From Haliotis rubra (Eukaryota): a stretch of DNA of 64,000 nt. Made by a program: the position numbers and the translations under genes. Positions 3,534 to 63,727 of the stretch are shown piece by piece; the stretch's first letter is position 1, and every line of letters starts with the position of its first letter. The DNA is taken from positions 1,984,001-2,048,000 of the forward strand of contig NW_025767401.1 of NCBI RefSeq assembly GCF_003918875.1, given 5' to 3'. The notes under the pieces were generated by a model that was given only the letters and a program-made list of their open reading frames with translations, was not told the origin of the DNA and did no database searches.

Positions 3534-3779
3534 AGTGCTTATGTAACTAAATGGGAAAGTTGGTACTTGAGTATCTCAGACAAACATTTCAGCAGTGATT
3601 TTGAACTATATCGCCCCTCATTTCATTGCAATATTGACCAACTGATTTACTTCCATGACATTTCGTTACATATCGATCAGACTGACCACCACTGAGAACC
3701 TGTTTACTTGGTGTCATATATATTTTGAATATACATCCAAATACACTGTAATTACTGATTTTTATTTTGTGTTTTTCAG

Positions 3780-4575
3780 GTACGTGATGACCAATATCTT
3801 CCTAACATGCACCTGCTGGATCACGGTTGCTGTGACGATTGAGCGCTTCATATCACTTCGATTCATTGCCTTTCCACACCTTGCCTGTACAATATCTCGG
3901 GCAAAGATTGCCATTGCTGGTATTTTTGTGGTTTCTGTGCTCTTCCACATCACAAAGTTCTTTGAGTATGTCCCCAACCCTGACCACCACAAAGGACCAA
4001 CACTGCTCCTGACTGAACTATCCAAGAGCAAGTCCTATGACAGATACGTGCACATCAGCAACATCACACTGACTGCCATCATCCCTGAGTTTCTCCTCGT
4101 GATCGTCAACAGCTTCCTCATCTACTTCCTGATGACCCATCACCGCCGTATGAAGCGTCACCGCACTGGTGTCCACTCCAGTGTTGACATGACCCACATC
4201 ACTATCATTGTCATCACGATGGTCCTCGTCTTCATCGTGTGTCACTCCTTCGGTCTGTTCCTTGCACTGGCCATTGCTGTCCATGGTCGCAGGCATGTGT
4301 TCATGAACCCTCTGTATCGAAGCTTTAAGCACATAAACACCCTTCTTGTCACAACCAATTCAAGCGTCAATTTTCTACTCTATTCAACAATCAGCAAAAA
4401 ATTCCGTACTACCTTTCTGGCTATTTTTTTAGGAAAGCTCCACGACAAGAACCTGTCGTGGAGCATGCAGAATTCCAACTCGAATTTCTCAAGTAAAACT
4501 AATGCCACTGCTTATATCTCTCAAATATCCACCGACAGCTCAAACGGTAAAGTTGGTGAACACTCTGAGGTGTAG
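3780..4575 (+). CDS. Last coding exon (TM3-TM7 and C-tail) of a rhodopsin-class peptide GPCR, FMRFamide/sex-peptide receptor-like; upstream exon(s) not seen in window
   Basis: Polypyrimidine tract and AG acceptor at 3778-3779. The protein shows WITVAVTIERF (TM3, DRY equivalent), TISRAKIAI before TM4, KFFEY, IIP in TM5, VFIVCH in TM6, NSSVNFLLY in TM7 and SKKFR helix 8. Stop at 4575. Confidence 0.9.
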
Positions 4576-14039: not shown

Positions 14040-14395
14040 CATGTATTAAAATTCAGATAGTAATGTTTTCTACTCATTTTAACAGGGAAAACATTTTCAT
14101 TGCCAGAGTTTCCAAGAGGAAGCTTTGGTCTATGGTAAACACTTCTTTAAATTTTAATAGGCCACATTTTTCACCATTGATGAAACCTATTGACTTGACA
14201 GACACGTTTGTTTGTGTTTTCATTAACAATCTAGTGTTTGAGATTAACTGTTCAAGCACAAATGTCCTGTTATATCCAGCTGAAATCTTTGTTTTGATGC
14301 TTGCCGATGTGTGGTGTGGCACAACTATCTTTTAAATAGGTATCATACATGATACGGAATGAAAATATATTTATCTGAAATTAACTATGATTCAC

Positions 14396-15002
14396 TTGAT
14401 TCACTTGAAGACTTGAAATGGTTGCAATATAGAATTATCCACAATATCCTCCCAACAAAACAACTACTTTATAAAATGGGATACACATCCTCACCAATAT
14501 GTCCATTTTGTGAACAAGAAAGAGAAACTATCCACCATATGTTATGGGAATGTGAATTTGTTTTTAAATTATGGAAAGAAATAGAATCATGGTTGAACTC
14601 GGTACAGTTACAACTGGAACTTACAAATAAAATCGTTATATTGGGAATGAAAGGAAAAAACAATAATCCGATTAATGAAATCATTTCAGTTGTCAAACAT
14701 TATATCTACAGATGCAGCATAAATGGTTTCAAAGCAAAGTTAGAATATTTAAAAAATGAAATTGTCCGTCACTATGATATGTCAAGATATGTTTACTTAT
14801 CTGCGGGAACTGAACAATTGTTTTTTCAACATTGGTCAACATTACATCTATTACTTGGAAGATAATCCAGCCAATTATACTTTTTCAGCCAACTGTCCAT
14901 TTTCATACATGTATTCATATACCATTGTATTATTATGAAACTTATCTATACATGTTTGCCTGTACATAAAATATTGAAAATAAAAAAAACAAAAAACAAA
15001 CA
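14396..15002 (+). mobile_element. 5'-truncated L1/Tx1-type LINE (zf-RVT C-terminus, 3' UTR, A-rich tail)
   Basis: ORF with LQYRIIHNILPT...CPFC...ETIHHMLWEC zinc knuckle, A-rich tail 14977-15002, TSD AACTATGATTCAC (14383-14395, 15003-15015). Confidence 0.9.
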
Positions 15003-24982: not shown

Positions 24983-25262
24983 CTTTCTCAGCCCTGCTAT
25001 GACCAAGGAACACATATACAGATATATTAATATTTTCACTAAAAGCTTAGGCAAGTCAAGTTGAAACTTAACCACTTTTCTTGATTCCACTGCAGAGGAG
25101 GAATGGTTCTTTTGTAAACACAAATAACAATTGTTTCGACAAAAAGGCTTTCGTAGACTAAGGATCAGTCTATACATATATGTGTTTTTCAAAACTAATC
25201 AAGTTATTACACCATGAATATTAACATGTTTGTTCAACTAGTATTTCATAAATCATGTGTAC

Positions 25263-26135
25263 CTGTTTGTTCACGTCATGTGAAGTGCTGTCTTTGTCCC
25301 TGAGACTATTCTGTAACTGTAGAAGTTCATGTTTGTGTTTCTCCACCAACTCCTCACTCTCCGAAAGTTGACTGATGAGCTGATCAATCTGTATCTTCAG
25401 CTCCTTCTCTAATGCTCCGAAATCCTTCACCATTTTCTCCTGTTCCTGCCGAAGCTTTGCCACATCCCCTTCCAGTGCAGCATTCTGAGATGCTTTCAAA
25501 GCTTCAAGCTCTTTCTCAAAAAAGGCTTGTGCTTTGGACATTTTCAGTTCATGGTCTTCCTCCAATTTGACTTTCTCATCCTGCAAAACATCTATTCTAT
25601 CCTTCAACTCCTGAATTTCCGTTTTGAACTTGTCCTCAACTTTTGTACACTCATTTAACCAGTCACTGTTTTGAGATCGTTGAAATGTTCGTAATTCATC
25701 TAACTCAAGTTCATGTTTCTGTCTAATTTCGTCCAAAGCTCTGGCTTTGTCAATGTCTACCTGCTGCATCCATTCCTCAAATTTAACAACCTTTTCTTCG
25801 AACTCTTGCTTAGCCTTCAACACTTCCTGCGAAAGGTCTAATATTCTTTTGGAATGTTCTGTCTTCAGCTCACATTCTCTCTCTTCTGCACGCTTCTTAA
25901 ACCTCTCAAACTCATCCAAGGCGGAACTTTTGTACTTCTCTTGTTCTGCCAGGGATGATTCGAGTGTCTGTATTTTCTTCCGATGATCAGCATCGGCATT
26001 GATTTTGTTTTTGTAGAGTTCCACTTTTTCTTTGGTTTCTGACAGCAGCTGTTGCAACTCAGACTCATGCTGCTCCTTGATGCTCTGAAGGACCGCTTCG
26101 TGTTCATCGTTCTTGGTGTTGAGAGCATAGATGAC
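25263..26135 (-). CDS. FAM184A: FAM184A/B-like, coding exon 2 (FAM184 N-terminal domain)
   Basis: 873 nt, AG/GT bounded, phase 0/0. Begins VIYALNTKNDEHE, the diagnostic FAM184 motif continuing from MSKKIAQLTK. Long E/K/Q/L coiled coil. Confidence 0.95.
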
Positions 26136-29052
26136 CTGGCAAGACACAGACATCATTTACACAGGGCATCAACACTTGATTTAAGAAACTAAGGACTTTG
26201 AGATACATGTAGTAACTTTTATCAAAGTTAAGCAGACAGACAGACAAATTTTTCCACAAATATGATGGACAACATTAGAACATTTGCAGCACAAGCCCAC
26301 CATCAGAGAGTAAATGTTGTTTCAATATTGAACGAATAATATTGTAGCTACAACATGGACAGAGAAACCCTGTCAGTCTGATCGAGTAAATTTTGGAGAT
26401 CCCACCTTTAAAACGATTACCCCAGGGAATTTGTTTACAAAGTACGTTACTATGCAGCTACAGTAGCCAGGAATGAACAATCTGTCAGTTCATTAATCTG
26501 GACAATTTGGGTGGGACATTGCTACTGTCAGGATTGAGAGGGTTCCACTGTATTTCACAGTGGTTGGGAAACAATCAAGTCTCCGCAGGGCTAATGAAAA
26601 GCAACAGTCCAAGACAAGGCTGCTATTGCTCTAAGTGAAATAGACCATCCCTTTACCATTAGGCAGATGGCAACACTGTGAAAACTAACTAGAAGACTAG
26701 ACAAAATAGAGATTAATTTTTAAGATCTATCAGCAAATGCAAACATGATTGCTTACTCAGAAATGTTAACAATATAATTTTATATTAAATTATTTTCTTT
26801 AATATTTCATACCTTTCATGATATATAATAATTGTCAAACCATACAAAAACCAAAAACATAAAAACACAACTTAACAGCTACTCTGTAACTCTTCAGCAT
26901 TCACCATATACATATTATCATGTCCTTTTCAAGCCCTAATGGCTGACAACTCTTCATCCTTACATAAAACCTGCTCCTGCTGTGACCCACATCGTGATCC
27001 CACCCATCATCTGTGCATTCATCATCCAGTAATGATGGTGGGCCATGTTTTATATACTTCATCCCCGTGGCCCACAAACCAGATAAAGCCCAGCCCTTAT
27101 CTCTCACAACAACCAAACTCCCTGTTCAAAGCACAGATCTTGTACCAGGCTATTTATACACAGTAAAGGTGCTGATTGTACTACTGGAAAAGAGATTTAT
27201 AAACATTCACTTGTTCGCCAGTTTCAGTTGGACGCCTTTTGACATTTCTCTTTATGCCAGGTCAGACTAGCCTCCCTGGTGTTGTTGGCTCTCAAAGATC
27301 ACATGTTGAATTGTGATACTGACAAGCAATTTACCAGTAAGCCAGGGAGAATACCAGTGCTATTTAAAGCAATGTACGACTGACATACTGCAATGCACAT
27401 CACATACATACTGGCGCTGTGGTCTGCATGAACAGATCGCATGTTTTTTGGCATGTAACCGTTCCATGAGAGCAGCTATCATGAATGACTAAACATGGGT
27501 CATTATCATATTAAAAGGCTTACTCATCTAATTTTACCAAATACATGTGTGACAATAATTGGGTGGAACCTAATACATGTGGGAAACGTTGGAACTTCAA
27601 ACAAATACTAGTATAAATCATAGCATTAAATAAAGGTCATTTCATCTTCTGGAACATTGAAAACAAGTTCTACTTTGTTCTGAAGAATTACCCTTTGATC
27701 ACAATGGCTAAGTAAAATGGTTTAATTACAAGCACCAAGACAGATTTAAGACAGGTTCAAATTTTGAGCTTAACGGATATATTTTTACTAAACCATACAC
27801 ATATAACTATATTTCTGGGACTAAATGTTAGTCGTAGTGTTCTCTTCTAAATGTAATAATGACAAGTACAGTTTTCATGTTGAGAAAAAGCCGAAATTGA
27901 TGCAGGTCATAGATATTTACATCACTGCAGTGAGTGAGTGAGTTTAGTTTTACACTGCACTCAGCAATATGGCAGTGGTCTGTAAATAGAAGAGTCTGGA
28001 CGAGACCATCCAGTGATCAACAGCATGAGCATTGATCTATGCAATATCTAGCCCAGCAACAATCATTATCTGCAGGAATATTTGTTTATATACTACATCA
28101 TGTATAGGACCAGGCAACATTACTGCTTGTATGGTTGATCCCTGGATTTTCTGGTCCAGACTCGATTATTTACAGACCGCCGCCATATAGCTGGAATATT
28201 GCTGAGTGTGGCATAAAACTAAACTCACTCACTGCTTGTATGCTTCTTTGTAATAAATATCATATACTGAGTATATATAATACATACACTATGCTCACCA
28301 AAACCTTGTATAATACTATGTTTATACTAGGCATATAATCTCTGGAAAACATACAGGACTAATAATATCCATATATCCAATCTAAACAAGAAGGGCATCT
28401 AGAGCAACCAGCTACCAAGTGCCAAGCTTCAACACAAATGCCACCTAGCCCCTTTCCCTCCCAGATGTCAAACACAAGGTGACTTTGATGAACATATAGC
28501 TCTTGTATCATTTGCCGGAGAAGTCAGTGATAGATTCCAACAGCTAAAACAGCTGGTGGAGTACACCTCTATTCTCTGGTCTTCTGTGTATGATCCTACA
28601 CACCAGCGAGACCAGCGTTCTGTAGTCTGCTGGCACACATATTCTTGAATTACACCAGACAGCTTCACCCTCAATGCTGGGACTACTTTTTCTCTTCACA
28701 GCCATGCTGAGAAAACATTAAAGCCTCTAAAAAACCTGCAGTATTAATACTAATATCAGGCTGCTAAATTAATTTTTTATTATAAAAATTAGGTCTTCAG
28801 GCTCAGATATGCATGTCAGCAGCTGGGGGAAAGAAACTAATTTATAAGGATTAGACTAATATGATCTTACCTCACATGTCCTTTGCTATATTGAAGTCAG
28901 CTGTTTAAAGTTTGTGTTGCCGGTGGTGGCCAACACATTTAACTTTATTGCTTTAATTAATCACATTAATCTGATGGACTGTGTGAGTGACAACATCCAG
29001 GGAAGTCAGTGTTTTGAGGCACAAGTATCAAGCATTGTTTCCAACTGTATAA

Positions 29053-47344: not shown

Positions 47345-47456
47345 AGGGAAATCTAGTAGCTATATCTATATCAGGCTGATATCAGGACTTCACAGAGTTT
47401 GGGCTGAAAGTTCCAGTCGTATTTTTGGATAGAGTTTCCCCACAGACTACTATAAG
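47345..47456 (+). promoter_or_regulatory. Putative promoter of cytokine-like gene A: TATA-like box with kB-like motifs
   Basis: TATAAG 47451-47456, ~80 bp before the ATG. AGAGTTTCCCC 47431-47441, TGAAAGTTCC 47405-47414 and AGGGAAATCT 47345-47354 resemble NF-kB/Rel sites. Confidence 0.4.
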
Positions 47457-47534
47457 AACAGCCACAAGAAGCAGGTAAGACATACGATCTGAGACATTGA
47501 TACGTCTGAAATATTTCATACTTCTAGCTATAAC

Positions 47535-47541
47535 ATGAAAG
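47535..47541 (+). CDS. Secreted helical cytokine-like gene A, coding exon 1 (M-K + 1 nt)
   Basis: AACATGAAAG|GTAAAG. The phase-1 donor joins exon 2 in frame to give the signal peptide MKGLLFLAVVYINLHQGLC. Paralog B has the same 7-nt exon. Confidence 0.7.
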
Positions 47542-47836
47542 GTAAAGCGTTACAGGAAATGTTTGATCGTTTGTCATGTCATACAGTAGTCAATCATGTT
47601 TGTTTTCACAGTTTGACTTATCTGATAACCTAAAGGTTATGCAACTTCTTATGTATTTTTTTAACGTATTATTTATATAAGTTTATTTGAAGTACAAACA
47701 AATTGGTGTTAGATGAATCTTGTATATTTTGTGTGCTATAAATTGGGAACAATTATCATGTAGACATGCCTACTGTGGATTCTTGTCCCCAGTGCGTATA
47801 CAAAACATGTCTATAGTGTTCCTATTAATGTGTTAG

Positions 47837-48053
47837 ACCTGTGAAGATCCGGTTTAGAATTGGGCTTGACTAACGAGATCGGGCGGTCAGGCTCGCTGAC
47901 TTTGTTGACACATGTCACCGTATCCCAACTGCGTAGAACGATGCTCATGCTGTAGATCACTCGATTATCTGCAGACCGCCACCATACAGCTGGAATATTG
48001 CTGAGTGCGGCGTTAAACAACAAACAATAACTAATCAATCAATCAATCAATCA
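47837..48053 (+). mobile_element. SINE-like repeat, family H, in intron 1 of gene A
   Basis: Body match, (AATC)n tail, TSD ATTAATGTGTTA. Confidence 0.88.
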
Positions 48054-48082
48054 ATTAATGTGTTAAGTCTTCCCTGTACCAG

Positions 48083-48306
48083 GGCTATTGTTCCTTGCTG
48101 TGGTGTACATCAACCTACACCAGGGACTCTGCAGGACCCTGTCCATCACGTCTGACCACTGTCAACCATGTGGTGCTCCATCTACGGATGGGAGAAGAAC
48201 TCACCTTCACAACCGTTCCCCTGGTGACATCTGCACCATCGCCAATGAATTCACCATCAAAATTGGCATCCTTAGGCGGACTGTCAGAAACCAACTGGAT
48301 ACACTT
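48083..48306 (+). CDS. Secreted helical cytokine-like gene A, coding exon 2 (signal peptide, SDxCQPC, predicted helix A)
   Basis: CCAG acceptor, GTGAGT donor, phase 1/0: LLFLAVVYINLHQGLCRTLSITSDHCQPC...CTIANEFTIKIGILRRTVRNQLDTL. Homologous to 56781-57016. Confidence 0.85.
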
Positions 48307-48637
48307 GTGAGTTTAATCGGATTATTTTCCTTGAATTTCGTTGATTCGTTGATCAGTCCTAAGTAACGTTTATATGCTGACACATTAAGTGTCATTTGAT
48401 AACACATGTATGCACTATGACTGATTAAATTAAGCATACAACGTCTTGTTTATTGCACAGAGCGACATTTCGATGTAGATTCTTAAACCGCTATCAATTG
48501 TCATTTTTGACCAACCAAGTTCTAGAATGCCGATTAAACAGTATAATTGATTCATGAAGAAAATGCTGGACATACGAAATAAATGTTGGGAAAAGAAAAA
48601 TATGGTGTTTGAAATGTTGAAATTGTTTCCTCGGCAG

Positions 48638-48736
48638 GTCAATGGTTTGTTTGATGGAGATGCCGATTACTTGGAGTGGCGTTACCAACAGAGACGACAT
48701 TTCCTACAGTGTGCTCCATCAAGTGATACATCAAGG
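48638..48736 (+). CDS. Secreted helical cytokine-like gene A, coding exon 3 (predicted AB loop)
   Basis: GCAG acceptor, GTAAGG donor, 99 nt, phase 0/0: VNGLFDGDADYLEWRYQQRRHFLQCAPSSDTSR. The [FY]D[GN]D motif is shared with B and C. Confidence 0.8.
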
Positions 48737-48849
48737 GTAAGGGTTCTATGTGGTCATGGTTACATATAACAAACAAGTACACACAATTGTCTTCGTAGTT
48801 GCTTGATAACCTTGGTAAGAATAATTGTACATCTGATAGTTGCACCTTA

Positions 48850-49415
48850 CTATTTAGGTATGGTTTGGTTTTATTTGGTTAACGCAGACAGTTGGCAATG
48901 TAAATATGTTTATTAGACAGCTGCGTATGCTGGCTATTGATATGTTTAAGCAGGAATGGCATTCAACTATGATTGGAAGTTCTATTTAAGTCGTTAACGT
49001 TGCTTGAGCCAGAATCTTATTTAGCAAACTTACGCTACAGAAATGTTTGCAATGTCTCTATACGTTTTAGATAAGGCCTTGATGATTTAGTGATTAACCG
49101 TGGGCGATATTTTTCTATTGAAAAGACCCAAAGACTATGTCCATTATGTAACAATATTGAATATGAATTCCATTTTATGTTTATTTGTCCTGTATATGAA
49201 AATCCAAGAAATAATTGTCTAACGCAATTGCCTTTATCTCATATCAATGTCTTACCTGAAAAGAACCTTCAAAACAACACAAAGTAGCCCTATTTATTTA
49301 CAATGCATTTTTGTTGAGAACAGAATTGGTTAGTTGATCATATATGCCATTGCTAATGTATATATCTTTTGTATATGGACCTATGACATTTCATGTAATA
49401 AAGAATTGATTGATT
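48850..49415 (+). mobile_element. Decayed LINE 3' fragment in intron 3 of gene A
   Basis: INRGRYFSIEKTQRLCPLCNNIEYEFHFMFICPVY is a LINE C-terminal CCHC-type knuckle; ends AATAAAGAATTGATTGATTG. Confidence 0.75.
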
Positions 49416-49452
49416 GCTACAAGTAGATCAGTGAATTTGTTTCTCGTTTCAG

Positions 49453-49779
49453 ATGTCAGCAATGGCGTCACTCTATGATCGACTTGTTGGCCTTCATATC
49501 TATGTCAACTTCACTGAAGGGTACCGCCGGTCTTGTTCTGTGACTGTTGAGGGGATCGCTCACCAAGTGTCCCTGGCGGTTTGTGACCTGCATCACATGA
49601 TGAGAGTGACGTCCCAGACGCAGGGTCATGAAGACGTGTGTCGCAAACAATGCGGTCTGGCCATCGGTGGGTGTGTGTCGTTCCAGAGACACGCCTTCAA
49701 TGCCTTGCGGTATGCATCGGATGTACTGGAATCCATATTCCAGGAGGCTGGACTTTTGAAACAGGATTGGGGGTGCTAG
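49453..49779 (+). CDS. Secreted helical cytokine-like gene A, last coding exon (predicted helices B-D)
   Basis: TTTCAG acceptor, phase 0: MASLYDRLVGLHIYVNFTE...C...AVCDLHHMM...DVCRK...GCVSFQRHAFNALRYASDVLESIF. Aligns by eye to the last exons of B and C. Confidence 0.85.
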   Translation: MSAMASLYDRLVGLHIYVNFTEGYRRSCSVTVEGIAHQVSLAVCDLHHMMRVTSQTQGHEDVCRKQCGLAIGGCVSFQRHAFNALRYASDVLESIFQEAGLLKQDWGC

Positions 49780-50405
49780 AAGCAAGGTTGGAGTGGTTGA
49801 AGCAGGATCGGGGGTTCTTGAAGCAGGATTAGGGTGCTAAAAGCAGGATTGGGGGTTTTAGAAGTAGGATTGGGGTGCTAGAAGCAATACTGTGGGCGCA
49901 AGAAGCAGGATTGGGGGGTGGTGGTGCTAGAAGCGGCATTGGGGGAGCTGGAAGCAATATTGTGGGCGCAAGAAGCAGGATTCGGGGCGCTAAAAGCACG
50001 ATTGGGGTGCTAGAAGCAGGGTCGGGGTGCTAGAAGCAATACTTTGGGCGCAAGAAGCAGGGTCGGGGTGCTAGAAGCAAGAGTGGGGATGCTAGTAGCA
50101 GGATTTGGGGGTTAGAAGCAATATTGGGAGTGCTTGAAGCAGGATTGGGGTGCTATTAGCAATATTGGGGATGCTAGAAGCAGTATTTGGGTGTTAGAAG
50201 CAATATTGGGGGTGCTTGAAGCAGGATTGGGGGGTGCTATTAGCAATATTTGGGTGCTAAAAGCAATACGGGGGTGTTCGAAGCAGGATTGGGGGTGCTA
50301 TTAGCAATATTGGGGTGCTAGAAGCAATACTGGGGTGCCCGAAGCAGGATTTGGGTGTTAGAGGCAATATCGGGGGTTCTAGAACTAGGATTGGAGTGCT
50401 AGAAA
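49758..50405 (+). repeat. 20-21 bp minisatellite (~30 units), consensus GAAGCAGGATTGGGGTGCTA
   Basis: Direct tandem repetition; the first unit overlaps the last codons and stop of gene A. Confidence 0.95.
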
Positions 50406-51206
50406 CATATTTTCTGTAACATTATTGGTGCTTATTTCGTTATTCACTGAAACAGGTCAATGGTTAGTAGGAGTCAATGCAACATTTTATGAGTGTGCAA
50501 TACCTTGGTTTAATAATTCTCATATTATCTCATATTATCACTGACTACATATTTTAAGATTTGATTTGACATTTGTAATTTGTCATCCCATTAGTTGTGG
50601 GTTATTTAATACATTCCGGCAATAAACCTTAAACATCCCATTGTTGCCAGCCACATACCACAAGAATTCAAGAACAACAGAAAAGGCTATACACTGTTCT
50701 GATTGTCCTACTTTCATGTGGATAAAGTATTTTGTACATTAGATAATTTATTGTTGATGTATTAACTAAGTTATTTAGAAGAAAATGTTCATATACGTGT
50801 ATTATGAATTTATTTACATGTTTACTTAGCTATGAAGGTCATAGTATGCTACAGATATTCATACATATTTCAGCTCAAACATTGTTTACATTAATATCGT
50901 ACTTTAAATGCAATGCCTCTTGATGTGTTTAAGTTTGTTGCCATTTAAGAGGGCCGTTTTAAAATATCCGTTCCGTTGCTGATTGTTGATTTGTACATAT
51001 GATTGTATGTATTTATTGATATTTTTGTACATTGTTTTTGCTTAAAGGATGTTACAGTTTTGCTGAAAGTACGTTTAAAATGTGAATAATTTTGCTATTA
51101 AATGTGACAAAAATATCCGTTGTCTTGATGTTTATAATTCATTTTATAGAACGAGTGTTGTATAATCCAGCGTTCCGTTTAAAAGGAACAACTGGAACTG
51201 GCTATT

Positions 51207-51420
51207 CTTCAGTAACCCATGCTTGTCATAAGAGGCCACTAACGGGATCGGGTGGTCAGGCTCGCTGACCTGGTCGACACATGCCATCGCATCCCAAATG
51301 TGTAGATCCATGCTCATGCTGTTGATCACTGGATTGTCTGGTCCAGACTTGATTATTTACAGACCGCCGCCATACAGCTGGACTATTGCTGAGTATGGCG
51401 TAAAACCAAACTCGCTCACT
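51207..51420 (+). mobile_element. SINE-like repeat, family H
   Basis: Body match. Its 3' flank is shared with the copy at 58297-58551. Confidence 0.88.
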
Positions 51421-53193
51421 AATTGAAAAAAGTATTCGTTTGATAAACTCTTATCGAAACGATAGCGTAGATGGACGCTCATGCTGTTGATCTCTGGATT
51501 GTCTGGTCTAGACTTGATTATTTACTGATCGCCGTCATATAACAAACTAAAACTCGTCTCGAAATGTGAACACATACCATATGTCTTCAAACACATGCAA
51601 AAGGCAAAAAGTTCAAGAATTTTTAGGAGGGAATAGGATAACATTTCATCCTCATATTGTTATCTGCATGTGAAGAAAAAGAAATAAAACTTTAGAGAAA
51701 CGGTCATGATGAAATTGTAACTATCAACATTCAAACCATGTACGTACAGCGGGAGTATTATCACGTTTGTGATATTACATACCTGTGTGTAACATTGCAT
51801 GAATGGCAACTGCGTCATGTGGAGTAACGAAGCAGCATTTCCCGGAAATCGTCCTTTCCCTGCTAAGGTGCCATTGTGCTTGGATCAACAAAAGCAGTGT
51901 TACACAATTCACAACAGTGAATGCAGCGACTATAACGGCTGTGTTACTCACTTCGACTGTGGTTCTAGCAAGACAAGTTCTTTGTCAGTGAATGAATATG
52001 ACGAACCTCTACACACCGAATGTCAAGGTTATGACGCTTGTATCTATATTTGGTCTACAACGTAGTAAATATCTAGACCATGGCCTAGTTTGTATAGTGG
52101 TGTATGTGACATCTCAGCATGCTCATTTTGAAATGCTGAGAAGATGCCATCAATGTTAGTATATGAATATTGTGGATACAACGGAAGGTAAAGCCCCGAG
52201 AACTGTATTAGTATAATGTAAAGTGTGTGTTCAATTTGCAATGAAATGCTCTGAAACATTGCTCTTAACGATCTGTAAAACATTATGATTCAACATTCAC
52301 CCATTAGGCGCACAGGATTCGAACCCGGGTGTTCGGCGTGACGAACCAACGCTTTAACCACTAGGCTACCCCACCGCCCCCTGAGTTATATTGATAACAA
52401 GACATATATTCATATAACTGAAATCACACAATAGCTATCATACACTATTGCACAGATATCTAGATTGGGTCGGCAGTGATTCATTGGGTCGCTAAGAGTG
52501 GGGGACATGCAACTGAATGCTCGTGAACTACGATCACACATCTAATATTATATTCTCTCTCTACATATATGACATTTTAAACGTGCAATATGTTTGGAGG
52601 CCTTTAATAATAGTGATCACTGTATGTTTATCGATTTACACGTGGCGCTGTACTTCCTTTAAATATTATGTTTTATGTAATACATTTGACACATACGTTG
52701 TGTTACTTTCGAATGTATGGACTTACGAATGCTTCTAATGGCGCTTTTAACGTTCAACACCATTATACCATAATTGCGTGAGTACATCTTTACATAATTA
52801 TTTTCATAATGTATTTCTGTCAGGCTGTGATGATTTGAAGTATGTGAAGGGGTGAGGAAGTCCAACGTCATACCGTTTGAACACTGGGACAAACCGATTC
52901 TTTATACAACCAGACAGCACTAGGACGTGTATGTAGACATGTAATGGCGTATTTGGATGTTTTACTGTGCAGTGTACATGTTGACTTCCATTAAAACCTT
53001 TTTAACGATGGTTTAATTATGTGTGAGAGTTTAAATAGTTATTGTGCAATTATGCTGTGAGGTTCAACAAAATATATCGTTTGAACACTCACAATGCGTG
53101 TGTTGTGTATTTGTCATGTGATGATTTGAAGCTAGTGAAGGGTTAAGGTGGGCCACAAAATGTACCGCTTGAACAAACCGTGTCAAATAAATA

Positions 53194-53378
53194 NNNNNNN
53201 NNNNNNNNNNNNNNNNNNNNNNNNNNNNNNNNNNNNNNNNNNNNNNNNNNNNNNNNNNNNNNNNNNNNNNNNNNNNNNNNNNNNNNNNNNNNNNNNNNNN
53301 NNNNNNNNNNNNNNNNNNNNNNNNNNNNNNNNNNNNNNNNNNNNNNNNNNNNNNNNNNNNNNNNNNNNNNNNNNNNNN
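53194..53378. other. Assembly gap (N run)
   Basis: Run of N. Confidence 1.
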
Positions 53379-54444
53379 CATTGCAGGATATAATGTAAAG
53401 TTCGTTGGAAATTCACTATGATATTGCCATTCACCATCATTTTGATAATTAGTTGTAACATGTTTATATTAATTTTGCGAAAACAAACATATGCTAATGA
53501 ATAAATTGTGGTGTCAAATTAAGGTGATTTTGAATCCTTAATGAGACCAATTGTTCACAGAAAGGATACCGTAATTTTCCGGCATGTCACAAACACACGG
53601 AAAGGCGACTCAAATGTTCACCTGAACAACCAGTGATTTTAGAATTAGTGCGTATGTTCATAGAAATAAAAGCTGTTATGTTTGAGCTGTTGTCCTCCGG
53701 CACAATTCAGCGTATCTATACTAAATGCCACTGTTATTTTTAAATTCAGGTGATAAATAATGTATTGCATTTTCTCTGAAATTATTGATATCGCGTTGAA
53801 ATGCAACCTGTCCGTGTTCATTTTAAACGCATCAGTTTATAAATTGCTGTAAATCTAGGAGATTGCATATGAAACTTAGGTGCTCTTCTAATTTTACCTT
53901 TATGTCCGAACTGTCAGTTTTCGGAATAATAAAATTGACAAATCTCAAGAGCCATGAAGTGAATGTAAAGCACGGGCATGCTTCATACTTCAAGTTTTCA
54001 CATTTCAGCACTGTTTTTGTCTGCGATATTTGGCATCATCGTTACATCCCAACGACAACGACAGGTTGTTTCATACTTAAGAAAAACTACATAAACACGA
54101 GCGTTGTTTTGGCAGTCAATAATTTTAATTCATAAAAAAACGAGAAAAATACATTCGACATTTCACTTTTCAACGATAATGAAAAGATTGATTATACATT
54201 TGAAAGAATATGAAAGATTAATAGTTTCACTGCTGCACGCATACAGTGTAATACAGCCCATTTGGACACTGAGGAATGTAACGTTCGTTGAAGACTGTTG
54301 ATAACCAACAAGGGAATACAACATGAGAAATACATATGATTGACATGAAACTTGGTACATGACATGGCACAGTGGAGAGATTATTGGGCAACGTAGTGTA
54401 CGCATTAGACACATATATGTGTTTCCGTGTTTTTTTGTTTAACG

Positions 54445-54683
54445 GACCCGTGAAGGTCCGGGTTAGAATTGATCTTCAGTAACCCATGCTTGTCGTAAGG
54501 GGCGACAAACGGTAAAGGGTGGTCAAGCTCGCTGAAGTGGTTGACAAATGTCATCGTATCCCAGTTGCGCAGTGCTCATGCTGCTGATCACTGGATTGTC
54601 TGGTCCACACTAGATTATTTACAGAACGCCGCCATATAGCTGGAATATTGCTGAGTGCGACGTAAAACTAAACTCACTCACTC
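54445..54683 (+). mobile_element. SINE-like repeat, family H
   Basis: Full body, (ACTC) tail, TSD TTGTTTAACG. Confidence 0.9.
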
Positions 54684-54804
54684 TTGTTTAACGTGGCACT
54701 CAGCAATATTACAACTGTTTGCCTGCATATAAATACCTTAAGTGACAATTAGAAGTTGGTAAACAAAGAACTTTTATGGACTGACATCTTCTCTATTGCA
54801 ATAG

Positions 54805-54867
54805 GTGGGTGAGGTGAAGTTGGGTTTTACGTCGTGCTTGAGAATATTTCGCTCATATGACAACGTG
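54805..54867 (-). mobile_element. 5'-truncated family M SINE (3' 63 bp only)
   Basis: Matches the SINE 3' end (13610-13675); 13-bp TSD TCTATTGCAATAG (54792-54804, 54868-54880). Confidence 0.85.
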
Positions 54868-55034
54868 TCTATTGCAATAGATACGACGTTTCGGTGTAGA
54901 TGCTAACACCGTTATAGACATAATTGTAAAAGGTAAATCAACTAAGGCAAGAAATAAATAGTATCATTGTAAATATGACTTTCCTGAGATTCAGTTGTCG
55001 TCGCATGAAGTGAGATCATGCCCTTGTGCTTCTG

Positions 55035-55322
55035 TTATGAACAGTTACGTCTCCTCAACTCTCCTAGGATCTCGTGAAATGTGTGCGCTGCCGTTATAAG
55101 AACACGTCTGGCAAAGATCTGGAAGGATGGACATCCAGGAGGGATATGTCCCTCTTTTATACATATGTCTCTGAAGTGTGCAGTGTGTGGCATCATGCCA
55201 AATACGTGGCACAGCGGAATATGGTCGGCGATGTTGTTGATGTTCACATCGCATCCACCTCTCATCTCAATGAGTTTCAGGTTCAGATGAAGGAATGAAA
55301 GCTTGTTGTAAATAATTTCCAT
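55035..55322 (-). CDS. Secreted helical cytokine-like gene B, last coding exon (predicted helices B-D)
   Basis: ACAG acceptor, phase 0: MEIIYNKLSFLHLNLKLIE...C...IPLCHVFGMM...DIC...GCPSFQIFARRVLITAAHTFHEILGEL. Clearly paralogous to 63217-63531. Confidence 0.88.
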   Translation of the reverse strand: MEIIYNKLSFLHLNLKLIEMRGGCDVNINNIADHIPLCHVFGMMPHTAHFRDICIKEGHIPPGCPSFQIFARRVLITAAHTFHEILGELRRRNCS

Positions 55323-55753
55323 CTGTGGCGAGAAAGTGATGAAATGTTTTTAGAGAATGTAAATTATTTAACCTTTAAAACCAGTATTACATTAGCTGTA
55401 TTATCAACGTTCTGTAAAACGCTAGATTCAATACCCTATAGGAACGACGGAAAATATCTTTCTAAATGAAAACGACACTGTGGTTATTTATGAATATTGT
55501 ATAGTTATGCATTATTTTCCCCTATTCAACAACATCTATTCCAATTTTAACGTAAACGTGTTGTAAATTCTGTAAAAACTCAGATTCAATACCCTACAGT
55601 AGAGTCAGAAACGGTTTCATTCTGTAGCATGAAAATCATACTATTATTATTTATGAATAAAGTATAGATTACGTATTATTTCTTTTTCATATGCTGCAAC
55701 ATAAATCCAACGTTAACGTAAATTATTTTATGTTTGATGCATATATGGCTTAC

Positions 55754-55825
55754 CCATGAAAGATTTGTTGGAGTTTCAATATGGAGACGGTCAGTGCCGA
55801 AGTCATCGTTGTCAAACACCATTTG
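55754..55825 (-). CDS. Secreted helical cytokine-like gene B, coding exon 3 (predicted AB loop; not in ORF track)
   Basis: TTTTCCTAG acceptor, GTAAGC donor, 72 nt, phase 0/0: QMVFDNDDFGTDRLHIETPTNLSW. Paralogous to gene C exon 63653-63727. Confidence 0.85.
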
Positions 55826-55972
55826 CTAGGAAAAGATTAAAACAAAAAGATTCATAAACATACGGCGATGTGAACTGGTATAATATTTCCGTTTAACATT
55901 ACTCCGCCTATAGCGACATGCATGTAGGTGCCCGTGTCCGTCTGTGACTGCTTGTACTGGTCATTATCTAAT

Positions 55973-56085
55973 CTGGGCCTAGATTTTCGAAGTTCTCTTA
56001 GCGCTAAGATAGTCGTAAGTTAATGTTAATGTATGGCACTTACAACTATCCTAGCGCTAAGAGGGCTTCCAAAATCTAGGCCCCG
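55973..56085. mobile_element. Palindromic MITE, PIF/Harbinger-like, in intron 2 of gene B
   Basis: GGGCCTAGATTTTCGAAG...CTTCCAAAATCTAGGCCC; almost wholly palindromic. Confidence 0.8.
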
Positions 56086-56562
56086 GTTTATAGAGCTAAC
56101 CCACTGTGATACCAGGTCCCAGTTTATACTGATTCCTTGTCAACCAGTTCTTGTTAATGTACTTCCGGTTGACTACTAGGGTGACAGCAGGTATCATCCT
56201 TTAACGTGAGTTGGTATAACGCGATCGGCTCTCGAACTACCTAGATACTCTATCTACTAGATGCGGTTGGAGGAATGTGGAGGCACTAAAGTACTAGTTT
56301 TCTAATTCAGACAAAGGAAAATAAATATTTGTTTTGAAAAAACGCATTGATGATCTGAATTACATTGTTTCATTGAAAACGTGGTTAATCTGTAATGATG
56401 AAATTTCCTTATGATACCAACCTTTGATTCTCTAATTGAATGTGGGTTCACGAAATACCGACAGACCTGCTATTATTTTTCGTGCCAGTAGACCTAATGA
56501 TTAACATATACACTAAGTATTGGCCTTATTGCAAGATGCATGTCCTATGCACTTGTCTCTTT

Positions 56563-56690
56563 GCATATAAAATATTAATAAATATAAATAAAATATAAAT
56601 ATAATATAAATACAATATAGATATAATATAAATACAATATAGATATAATATAAATACAATATAAATATAATATAAATATAATATGATATA
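56563..56690. repeat. AT-rich simple repeat
   Basis: (ATATAATATAAATACAATATAG)-like repeats. Confidence 0.9.
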
Positions 56691-56780
56691 AAGAAAAGTA
56701 CAATCAATGCACTTTATCGTACTTGCTCCAGCACCACCTACTGATGGCAAGTCGTCCATGGACGTGTCAGCTAAACATAC

Positions 56781-57016
56781 CAGGTGCTGCCTTGATCGAT
56801 TCACGATTCTGTGAAGCCGTCGTATCTGGGCGATGAGTTCATGGCGGTCGTGGCAGTCGAGCGTTAGGTCTTCCTCAGACAGGTTGACGAGTTGACTGAC
56901 CGGCTGTAGGACACGGCCCGAACCTGTGCATGGTTGACATGTGTCAGACAGGTAACGGTTGACCACACACAAGCCATCTTGACTGACCAGGCACAGACAC
57001 AGGGCCATAGCGAACA
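56781..57016 (-). CDS. Secreted helical cytokine-like gene B, coding exon 2 (signal peptide, SDxCQPC, predicted helix A)
   Basis: TTCCAG acceptor, GTATGT donor, phase 1/0: FAMALCLCLVSQDGLCVVNRYLSDTCQPC...CHDRHELIAQIRRLHRIVNRSRQHL. Confidence 0.88.
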
Positions 57017-57253
57017 CTGGAAGATAGTGTATAGAGAAAGGTGTTTATAATCTGTATAAATAGCCTTACAAAGTAACTTAGCGCTGTCGTAAGTCTATGT
57101 TGAGGTCAAGAATTACGATCATCAGAGCAAAAAGATCACTTTGTACAACTCGCTGTTGTGGAATAATACATCATGTAAGAAGACTTGTACACATATGTGT
57201 TAGAAGAAAATCCGTTACGTACATAAACAAATAAATGAAATAAAATGGCCTAC

Positions 57254-57260
57254 ATTTCAT
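57254..57260 (-). CDS. Secreted helical cytokine-like gene B, coding exon 1 (M-K + 1 nt)
   Basis: GTCATGAAAT|GTAGGC on the minus strand, phase 1, giving MKLFAMALCLCLVSQDGLC. Mirrors gene A exon 1. Confidence 0.7.
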
Positions 57261-57331: not shown

Positions 57332-57404
57332 TTTATAAGCACTTTGGACCTGAAACCTGGAAATTACTGAAACTTGAAGTCTCATAGCAAAAGTTTTGCA
57401 CAAT
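57332..57404 (-). promoter_or_regulatory. Putative promoter of gene B: TATAAA with kB-like and C/EBP-like motifs
   Basis: TATAAA on the minus strand at 57332-57337, ~75 bp before the ATG; GGAAATTACT 57359-57368; TTGCACAAT 57396-57404. Confidence 0.4.
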
Positions 57405-62169: not shown

Positions 62170-62512
62170 GAGGTGAGGTGAACTGGGGTTTAACGTCGTA
62201 CTTAAGATTATTTCACAGATATGATGACGTGCATACATGTGTATGTGTGGCTGCTTGTACTAGCCCAGACCTAAGCTGGTTTTATAGTGCAAGCTCACTG
62301 AGATACCATGCTGGAGCTAAGCATGAATACCCCACTCACACATTATACTGACTCCGAGCTGATTAAGCCATGTTATACCCATTAATGCCGAGCGCCAGGC
62401 AGGGACCAACAAGTACCATATTTTGACGTCTTTTGGTATGACGCGACCGGGATCGAACCCGCGACCTTCCGCTCTCCGGGCGGACGCTCTGACCACTACA
62501 GCACGGAGGCGG
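62170..62512 (-). mobile_element. tRNA-derived SINE, family M
   Basis: Reverse-complement match to 13318-13675, including A/B boxes and (CACCT)n tail. Confidence 0.92.
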
Positions 62513-63216: not shown

Positions 63217-63531
63217 TCAATAACAATGACGTATTGTGTATCTCGTCAATTCACCTAGGATCTCGTTAAATGTATGCACTGCAGTTGTAAGGACGCGGTA
63301 TGCAAATAACTGAAAGGATGGACAAATTCCTGAAACGTGTCCATCTTTTCTGCATATGTCATTGAAACGTTCCGTCTGAGACGACCGGGCCATCATGTAG
63401 TGCATGTGACACAGGGGAATACACTGGGCTGTGTTGGCCGTATTCACTGAACATGCATATTTCCTTGGATGAGTCTCGATGAGTTTCAGGTGAAGGTGAA
63501 GGAAAGACAGTTGGTTGTAAATTCTTTCCAT
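63217..63531 (-). CDS. Secreted helical cytokine-like gene C, last coding exon (predicted helices B-D)
   Basis: TTTCAG acceptor, phase 0: MERIYNQLSFLHLHLKLIE...ICPSFQLFAYRVLTTAVHTFNEILGEL. Paralog of gene B. Confidence 0.88.
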   Translation of the reverse strand: MERIYNQLSFLHLHLKLIETHPRKYACSVNTANTAQCIPLCHMHYMMARSSQTERFNDICRKDGHVSGICPSFQLFAYRVLTTAVHTFNEILGELTRYTIRHCY

Positions 63532-63652: not shown

Positions 63653-63727
63653 CCATGAAAGTCCTACAGGAGTGTCGATGTTTAGTAGGTCTACAGCAAT
63701 GCCATCCCCATCATATACATTAATGAT
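63653..63727 (-). CDS. Secreted helical cytokine-like gene C, penultimate coding exon (predicted AB loop); 5' exons beyond right edge
   Basis: TTCTCAG acceptor, GTAAGT donor, 75 nt, phase 0/0: IINVYDGDGIAVDLLNIDTPVGLSW. Confidence 0.85.

Follow-up and report, generated by a model that had tools for sequence, protein, structure and literature searches.

The 64,000-nucleotide (nt) stretch of DNA from the abalone Haliotis rubra analysed here (the window; contig NW_025767401.1, positions 1,984,001 to 2,048,000) contains three related genes for predicted secreted helical proteins, called A, B and C below. Gene A lies on the forward strand and genes B and C on the reverse strand. A and B converge, and C crosses the end of the window. 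Each gene is divided into four coding exons by introns of phases 1, 0 and 0, and this plan invites comparison with vertebrate genes for class I helical cytokines.

Helical cytokines diverge beyond the reach of sequence searches, and gene structure is among the few characters able to survive. It has already been used for IL-6 (bioRxiv 10.64898/2026.04.02.716188) and IFN (bioRxiv 10.64898/2026.05.30.728932) of lampreys.

A shared four-exon plan

The first coding exon of each gene is tiny and ends in phase 1 within the signal peptide. An earlier interpretation of this DNA, made from its letters alone (the sequence-only reading), had proposed such an exon for A and B (ATGAAAG and ATGAAAT), and the gene models bear it out. 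In gene A, exon 2 codes for the remaining signal peptide, an N-terminal segment with a CxxC motif and predicted helix A. Exon 3 corresponds to the predicted AB loop, including a short helix. Exon 4 carries an invariant SFQ where predicted helix D begins. A scripted junction table gives cumulative coding lengths of 7, 231 and 330 for gene A, and hence phases 1, 0 and 0. The phases of gene B are also 1, 0 and 0.

Gene C was completed from a piece of the same contig that overlaps the window end and reaches 9 kb beyond it (L003, positions 2047001-2057000). The sequence-only reading had seen its two phase-0 junctions, which gene C does share with the others. Once the 5' exons beyond the window end are added, its phases are likewise 1, 0 and 0.

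All introns of the three genes start with GT and end in a pyrimidine tract and AG, as read in the genomic DNA on both strands. The seven junctions that had been named beforehand proved correct to the base and canonical GT-AG in a scripted reading of both strands. Once spliced, the frames are open from ATG to stop and code for 218 (A), 200 (B) and 202 (C) amino acids (aa). In A, B and C alike, intron 2 lies exactly 25 residues past a conserved cysteine, and the same aligned methionine opens exon 4. Exon 3 is weakly conserved and differs in length (33, 24 and 25 codons in A, B and C). The coordinates are collected in Table 1.

Table 1. Exons, upstream signals and assembly gap. Positions refer to the window, unless they are preceded by L003 (the piece of the same contig described above) or L006 (the H. 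rufescens locus).
Feature	Position	Strand	Description
Gene A, coding exon 1	47535..47541	+	7 nt, ATGAAAG, donor gtaaag; phase 1 within signal-peptide codon 3
Gene A, exon 2	48083..48306	+	224 nt, ccag acceptor, gtgagt donor; ends in phase 0
Gene A, exon 3	48638..48736	+	99 nt, gcag acceptor, gtaagg donor; phase 0 at both ends
Gene A, exon 4	49453..49779	+	108 codons and TAG; predicted helices B, C and D
Gene A, TATAAG box	47451..47456	+	79 nt 5' of start codon; followed by 5'-splice-site-like GGTAAG
Gene B, coding exon 1	57254..57260	-	7 nt, ATGAAAT, donor gtaggc; phase 1
Gene B, exon 2	56781..57016	-	236 nt; signal peptide, CxxC segment, predicted helix A; ends in phase 0
Gene B, exon 3	55754..55825	-	72 nt, phase 0 at both ends; predicted AB loop
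Gene B, exon 4	55035..55322	-	95 codons and TAA; predicted helices B-D
Gene B, TATAAA box	57332..57337	-	72 nt 5' of start codon
Gene C, exon 1	L003 2125-2119	-	7 nt, ATGAAAG, donor gtaaac; 262 nt 5' of exon 2
Gene C, exon 2	L003 1856-1645	-	212 nt, starts with hydrophobic signal-peptide core; donor gtaagc, phase 0
Gene C, exon 3	63653..63727	-	75 nt, phase 0 at both ends; predicted AB loop
Gene C, exon 4	63217..63531	-	104 codons and TGA; predicted helices B-D
TATA box and splice-site-like motif	47451-47481; 57337-57310 (-); L003 2212-2185 (-); L006 9917-9946		A, B, C and H. rufescens orthologue, in this order
Assembly gap (N)	53194..53378	.	in intergenic DNA, where A and B converge with their 3' ends

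The proteins begin with hydrophobic N-termini, which read by eye as predicted signal peptides (MK-LLFLAVVY.., MK-FAMALCLCLV.. and MK-FILIVCLV.. in A, B and C). The products are predicted to be secreted, disulphide-rich and all-alpha, with about 170-190 residues in the mature form. This is within the size of about 160-200 residues looked for in a cytokine. Identity among the three paralogues is about 30-35%; in exon 4, protein A shares about 34% of residues with B and with C, and B and C share about 60%. The family has three members, A, B and C, in the 1.38-Gb assembly, and a search of the assembly for further paralogues found none beyond these.

Each gene has a TATAAG or TATAAA box about 72-79 nt 5' of its ATG. 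A motif resembling a 5' splice site (GGTAAG or GGTATG) follows 6-20 nt past the box, about 55-65 nt 5' of the ATG. The same arrangement of TATA box and GGTAAG-like motif is found in the H. cracherodii orthologue.

The assembly gap between A and B begins 3.4 kb beyond the stop of A (49779) and ends 1.66 kb beyond the stop of B (55035). Because it lies in the 3' intergenic DNA of convergent genes and is crossed by no exon or intron, continuity and frame at this point are irrelevant to the finding. An upset of a gene model by the gap can thus be ruled out.

Repeats accompany the genes. A minisatellite at 49758-50404 consists of about 31 copies of a 20-nt unit (a 41-nt period is also present), GAAGCAGGATTGGGGGTGCTA. 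Its start overlaps the final codons of gene A with their TAG stop, and the first repeat unit thus forms the C-terminal tail of protein A. No minisatellite array follows the stop of the H. rufescens orthologue. A tRNA-like stretch lies downstream of gene C at about 62430-62505 (-), where ARAGORN called no tRNA. A tail motif, '...aaaccc(c)a(g/a)(t/c)ttcacctcacc', occurs downstream of both B and C (near B at about 54815-54850, -). The tRNA-like stretch and the shared tail motif look like insertions of short interspersed elements (SINEs).

Conservation among abalones and the start exon

Evidence that the genes are real and maintained is provided by other species of the same genus. An exon-4 profile was searched with HMMER against 1.84 billion representative proteins. 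The sole true match (E = 1e-37), RefSeq XP_048249759.1, comes from Haliotis rufescens and is annotated as 'uncharacterized protein'; it clusters with H. rufescens isoform X2 and a protein of H. cracherodii. The search also drew one spurious low-complexity protein, whose Pfam matches are to repeats and low complexity. Queried with exon 4 of gene C, a word-index protein search gave no candidate.

The H. rufescens locus (L006) has the first exon ATGAAAG, identical to that of gene A, followed by the donor gtaaat, and introns at the same three places. When it is spliced there, the locus translates into exactly XP_048249759.1, which means that a separate annotation pipeline reached the same four-exon plan. 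The exon ATGAAAG with donor gtaaat is also kept in H. cracherodii (L007).

Comparison of gene A with its H. rufescens orthologue gives 0.48 synonymous (dS) and 0.092 nonsynonymous (dN) substitutions per site, and thus a dN/dS of 0.19. Taken exon by exon, dN/dS is 0.29 in exon 2, 0.09 in exon 3 and 0.17 in exon 4. Since the ratio is below 0.3 in each of them, these exons are coding and under purifying selection.

The 5' end of the gene models could nevertheless be wrong. In that case, translation would start in another exon further upstream or from an internal ATG, and the 7-nt exon would be unused. The RefSeq model of H. cracherodii does have another first coding exon, of 31 nt (L007 10001-10031), about 960 nt upstream. 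This exon, however, is joined to the acceptor used by the 7-nt exon, likewise in phase 1, and nothing in the window corresponds to it. In H. rufescens, RefSeq isoform X2 begins at an internal methionine and might come from a transcript that skips the 7-nt exon, whereas isoform X1 uses that exon. Gene B has the weaker donor gtaggc and an in-frame ATG three codons into exon 2, but in A and C no in-frame ATG precedes the hydrophobic core in exon 2. Finally, the sequence ATGAAA(G/T) followed by GTA is kept in A, B, C and two other species, despite diverged flanking non-coding DNA. A wrong 5' gene model is very unlikely.

The stretch around the alternative 31-nt exon (L006 8747-9346) is 97% identical in H. 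rufescens and has no match in the window. Between genes A and B, a degenerate additional copy of exon 2 of gene A is found in H. rufescens (L006 16447-16630) and in H. cracherodii (L007 17558-17875). No such copy was seen in the A-B spacer of the window; it may be absent or lie within the assembly gap.

The window also holds a FAM184 homologue, with a large exon at 25221-26156 (-; Pfam E = 5e-55). In H. rufescens and H. cracherodii, too, FAM184 lies beside the cytokine-like gene. As a common neighbour in three Haliotis species, it indicates that local synteny has been kept.

Likeness to class I helical cytokines

Structures were predicted with AlphaFold from a shallow alignment, with the H. 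rufescens orthologue of A as the query. One run used the full length, and the other omitted the N-terminal 43 residues. Exon-2 and exon-3 fragments of B and C were excluded from the alignment (MAFFT placed them on helix D). Four helices agree in both runs: A (residues 48-79/81), B (111-130/131), C (140-157/158) and D (181/185-206). Two extra short helices, at 85-98/101 and 162/164-175/177, also appear in both.

Introns 2 and 3 fall at ends of these predicted helices. In the low-confidence models, intron 2, after residue 76, is in the last turn of predicted helix A, and intron 3, after residue 108, is two residues ahead of predicted helix B. Exon 3 thus equals the predicted AB loop, as the sequence-only reading had expected of introns bracketing that loop. 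The predicted loops are long, short and long, with about 30 (AB), 9 (BC) and 25 (CD) residues. Such lengths would match the needs of an up-up-down-down bundle, in models whose confidence (a predicted local distance difference test score, pLDDT, of 45) is too low for topology to be read from them.

The gene plan can be compared with that of vertebrate cytokines. IL-6 and GH introns are placed around the AB loop, and the phases of IL-6 genes are 1-0-0-0. These genes are interrupted by a single intron in the signal peptide and by three in the domain, and the conservation of the phases has served as evidence of orthology (bioRxiv 10.64898/2026.04.02.716188). Single introns have been lost in bona fide members of the IL-6 family, as the same study reports. 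The three abalone genes and the H. rufescens orthologue of A have the first three introns of this plan and lack the fourth, after helix C. Helices B to D therefore share one exon, and the absence of a last intron before helix D agrees with what had been noted from the sequence.

The five-exon genes of IL-6, G-CSF and IL-11 (phases 1-0-0-0) are the closest parallel. Like the abalone genes, they start with a very small coding exon, and they have a phase-1 intron within the signal peptide and a phase-0 intron at the end of helix A. Their products are likewise secreted, about 180-200 residues long, and carry an aromatic residue where helix D begins. The abalone genes differ in having no fourth intron after helix C, and their products show no sequence or profile similarity to this group. 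They also differ from IL-6 and G-CSF in having eight conserved cysteines, including those of the N-terminal CxxC.

Genes of the GH/PRL/EPO type have a first coding exon of about 10-28 nt that ends in phase 1, and then phase-0 introns that bracket an AB-loop exon. The abalone genes differ from them by lacking the last intron, by another cysteine pattern and by having no match to Pfam Hormone_1 or EPO_TPO.

A further resemblance concerns the group of LIF, OSM, CNTF, CT-1 and CLCF1, which shares the predicted long-chain helical layout and a phenylalanine at the N-terminus of helix D. LIF also has an N-terminal extension with cysteines before helix A, as the abalone proteins do. In vertebrates, the genes of this group have no intron before helix B, whereas the abalone genes have one. 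The abalone proteins do not match Pfam LIF_OSM or CNTF.

The phenylalanine just mentioned belongs to the SFQ that is invariant in A, B and C. It is residue 185 of the H. rufescens protein and the first residue of predicted helix D. An aromatic residue in this area marks site 3 in the gp130 family, where it is the F of FXXK in LIF, OSM, CNTF and CLCF1, and a W in IL-6, IL-11 and IL-27 p28 (PMC10022904). Compared with the FXXK of LIF, OSM and CNTF, gene A has F-Q-R-H, and the lysine is not kept. The position of the phenylalanine, which depends on the predicted helix, fits the site-3 pattern weakly.

A different line of evidence comes from a search with protein language-model features. The query was the mature H. 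rufescens protein, and the targets were limited to clusters with a Pfam family. The ten matches listed are all clusters of long-chain class I cytokines, with scores of 0.89-0.93 and 193-207 of 256 features in common with the query. The best is IL6/GCSF (0.93), followed by LIF_OSM (0.92), cardiotrophin/CNTF (0.92), IL-12a (0.91) and IL-11 (0.91 and 0.90). Somatotropin (0.90), a LIF fragment (0.90) and IL-27a (0.89) are also listed.

The sequence-only reading had argued that gene structure independently supports deep homology with class I cytokines. The plan itself is real, conserved and parallel to that of IL-6, G-CSF, GH and EPO genes; the word 'independently' was an overstatement. Gene structure is moderate evidence that agrees with the feature search and with the layout of helices and loops, and is not independent proof.

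Two other kinds of protein can be set aside. Class II cytokines (IFN/IL-10) are also secreted helical proteins of about 200 aa. A study of lamprey IFN gives the phases of class II genes as 0-0-0-0 and documents paralogues in which the last two exons are fused (bioRxiv 10.64898/2026.05.30.728932). A class II gene plan was rejected for the abalone genes: their first intron is in phase 1 at codon 3 and not in phase 0, and no class II cytokine is among the feature matches listed.

The second kind is the abalone sperm protein lysin and its relative sp18, which are likewise Haliotis-restricted, secreted and helical. Abalone lysin evolves under positive selection. Kinship with lysin or sp18 was rejected, as there is no match to Pfam Egg_lysin, the proteins are rich in cysteine, and the dN/dS of 0.19 reflects purifying selection.

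Weighing a cytokine ancestry

The reading that we prefer, and to which we would give an even chance, is that genes A, B and C code for class I helical cytokines (IL-6/LIF/CNTF/GH kind) that have diverged very far. The three tandem paralogues inherited their four-exon plan from one ancestral gene. That plan comprises a 7-nt phase-1 exon, an exon for the signal peptide, CxxC segment and predicted helix A, a symmetric (0,0) AB-loop exon of variable length, and an exon for helices B, C and D. It would amount to the ancestral IL-6/G-CSF/GH plan minus its last intron. The products would be secreted ligands that engage a receptor of the gp130/Domeless type through helix faces A/C and A/D and through the site-3 aromatic residue at the start of helix D. 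JAK and STAT signalling would then follow. The analysis shows the junctions and phases, their conservation across paralogues and orthologues, purifying selection, helical content and where the introns lie against the predicted helices; the up-up-down-down topology, the homology with vertebrate cytokines, the receptor and the pathway are what we infer.

Alternatively, the proteins may form a Haliotis-restricted, secreted, cysteine-rich helical family with no class I cytokine ancestry, such as a hormone, a pheromone, a defence protein or a matrix protein. The intron pattern would then be a coincidence, repeated by tandem duplication. The prospects of this explanation fall somewhat short of even. 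A number of observations count against a cytokine ancestry, several of which favour the coincidental pattern, and they are best considered together with what opposes them.

Intron phases. The phases by themselves are the commonest ones. At an assumed generic phase-0 share of about 0.46, the probability of two phase-0 introns is 0.21. Phase 1 is the most frequent phase in proteins with signal peptides, and phase 0 elsewhere (PMC1626468). How little phases can select is illustrated by the lamprey genome, where a genome-wide screen for 0-0-0-0 gave 132 genes before other filters (bioRxiv 10.64898/2026.05.30.728932). On the other hand, the general excess of phase 1 sits near the signal-peptide cleavage site (PMC1626468), and the abalone signal-peptide intron is at codon 3, away from that site. 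Signal-peptide introns placed much like this are a feature of IL-6, LIF, GH and EPO genes.

Intron positions. If introns were placed uniformly, two phase-0 introns would lie no more than 3-8 residues from where predicted helix A ends and predicted helix B begins with P = 0.0008-0.004. These are the two boundaries used by genes of the IL-6/G-CSF/GH type, which speaks against coincidence. The value rises to 0.01-0.03 if any pair of helix boundaries counts as a match. Because A, B and C are tandem duplicates, they are one evolutionary observation and not three. The placement of the introns at helix ends rests on secondary structure predicted by AlphaFold with a pLDDT of 45, and the vertebrate half of the comparison is background drawn from the literature.

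Structure. The confidence of both models is low, with pLDDT values of 45.6 and 45.4 and predicted template modelling (pTM) scores of 0.39 and 0.35. Searches with these low-confidence models, by Foldseek against the PDB, by VIA-align against 48,161 chains and by the Atlas shape search, brought up generic helical bundles, with no cytokine among them. With models of this quality, such an outcome neither supports nor refutes a cytokine fold. The long, short, long loop pattern and the invariant aromatic residue where predicted helix D begins are nevertheless difficult features for a family unrelated to cytokines. The cysteines point in the opposite direction: IL-6 and G-CSF have two disulphides, unlike the eight-cysteine pattern of the abalone proteins.

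Sequence searches. In the HMMER search described above, the family was found solely in Haliotis, and this genome has three members. Pfam was queried with single-exon translations of A, B and C and with the full-length Haliotis orthologues. There was no match for any exon (E up to 10) or for the full-length orthologues (E up to 1). The profiles IL6, GCSF, LIF_OSM, CNTF, IL11 and Hormone_1 were among those that gave no match, which is usual for very divergent cytokines and leaves membership possible. A sequence-profile search of the PDB, with E up to 10 allowed, was also without match. Of the searches by sequence, profile, fold and features, the language-model feature search alone tied the proteins to cytokines.

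Feature search. Calibration of the feature-search tool has shown that 4-10% of shuffled proteins reach a score of 0.9, and that a third of these obtain ten matches from the same clan. Since shuffled proteins can score 0.9, the feature-search match is a lead and not proof. When exon 4 of gene C was the only query, the feature search yielded no usable match. Coincidence would still have to account for ten listed and named matches that are all long-chain class I cytokines, each sharing more than 190 of 256 features.

The signalling context bears on what the proteins would do if they are class I cytokines. A STAT gene is present in this genome. A search of the genome for Pfam IL6Ra-bind came up empty, as did its controls, and therefore carries no weight. 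In molluscs, an IL6R-like receptor, JAK and STAT have been reported, and the ligand is not known (PMC13203501). According to the same 2026 survey, IL-6-family ligands have been found in vertebrates only (PMC13203501). The literature search found no paper that describes the present family, or any helical cytokine of an abalone or other mollusc.

To our knowledge, Drosophila Unpaired (Upd) is the main accepted class I-type ligand outside vertebrates, and Upd1-3 are the sole established JAK-STAT cytokines of protostomes. Upd and the abalone proteins are alike in being secreted, helical protostome proteins without sequence-detectable similarity to vertebrate cytokines. They differ in that Upd proteins are larger, and the abalone proteins match no Pfam family, that of Upd included. 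A tentative and rather doubtful proposal is that, with A, B and C, class I long-chain helical cytokines have been recognised in a lophotrochozoan for the first time, and that they are the missing ligands of the molluscan module formed by an IL6R/gp130/Domeless-like receptor, JAK and STAT.

The two explanations would have different consequences. If the genes are true relatives of vertebrate cytokines, the IL-6/GH exon plan dates to the bilaterian ancestor. The proteins would then be directly testable ligand candidates for invertebrate JAK-STAT signalling, and they would have a practical side in abalone immunity and in aquaculture. Should the genes be unrelated to cytokines, they make up an ordinary secreted family confined to one lineage, and an example of how little intron phases alone prove.

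Elsewhere in the window, an intron-free open reading frame (ORF) at 3655-4575 (+) codes for 306 aa with rhodopsin-family/Srw domains of G protein-coupled receptors. Another ORF, at 14359-14865 (+), has a zf-RVT domain and is probably a retroelement fragment.

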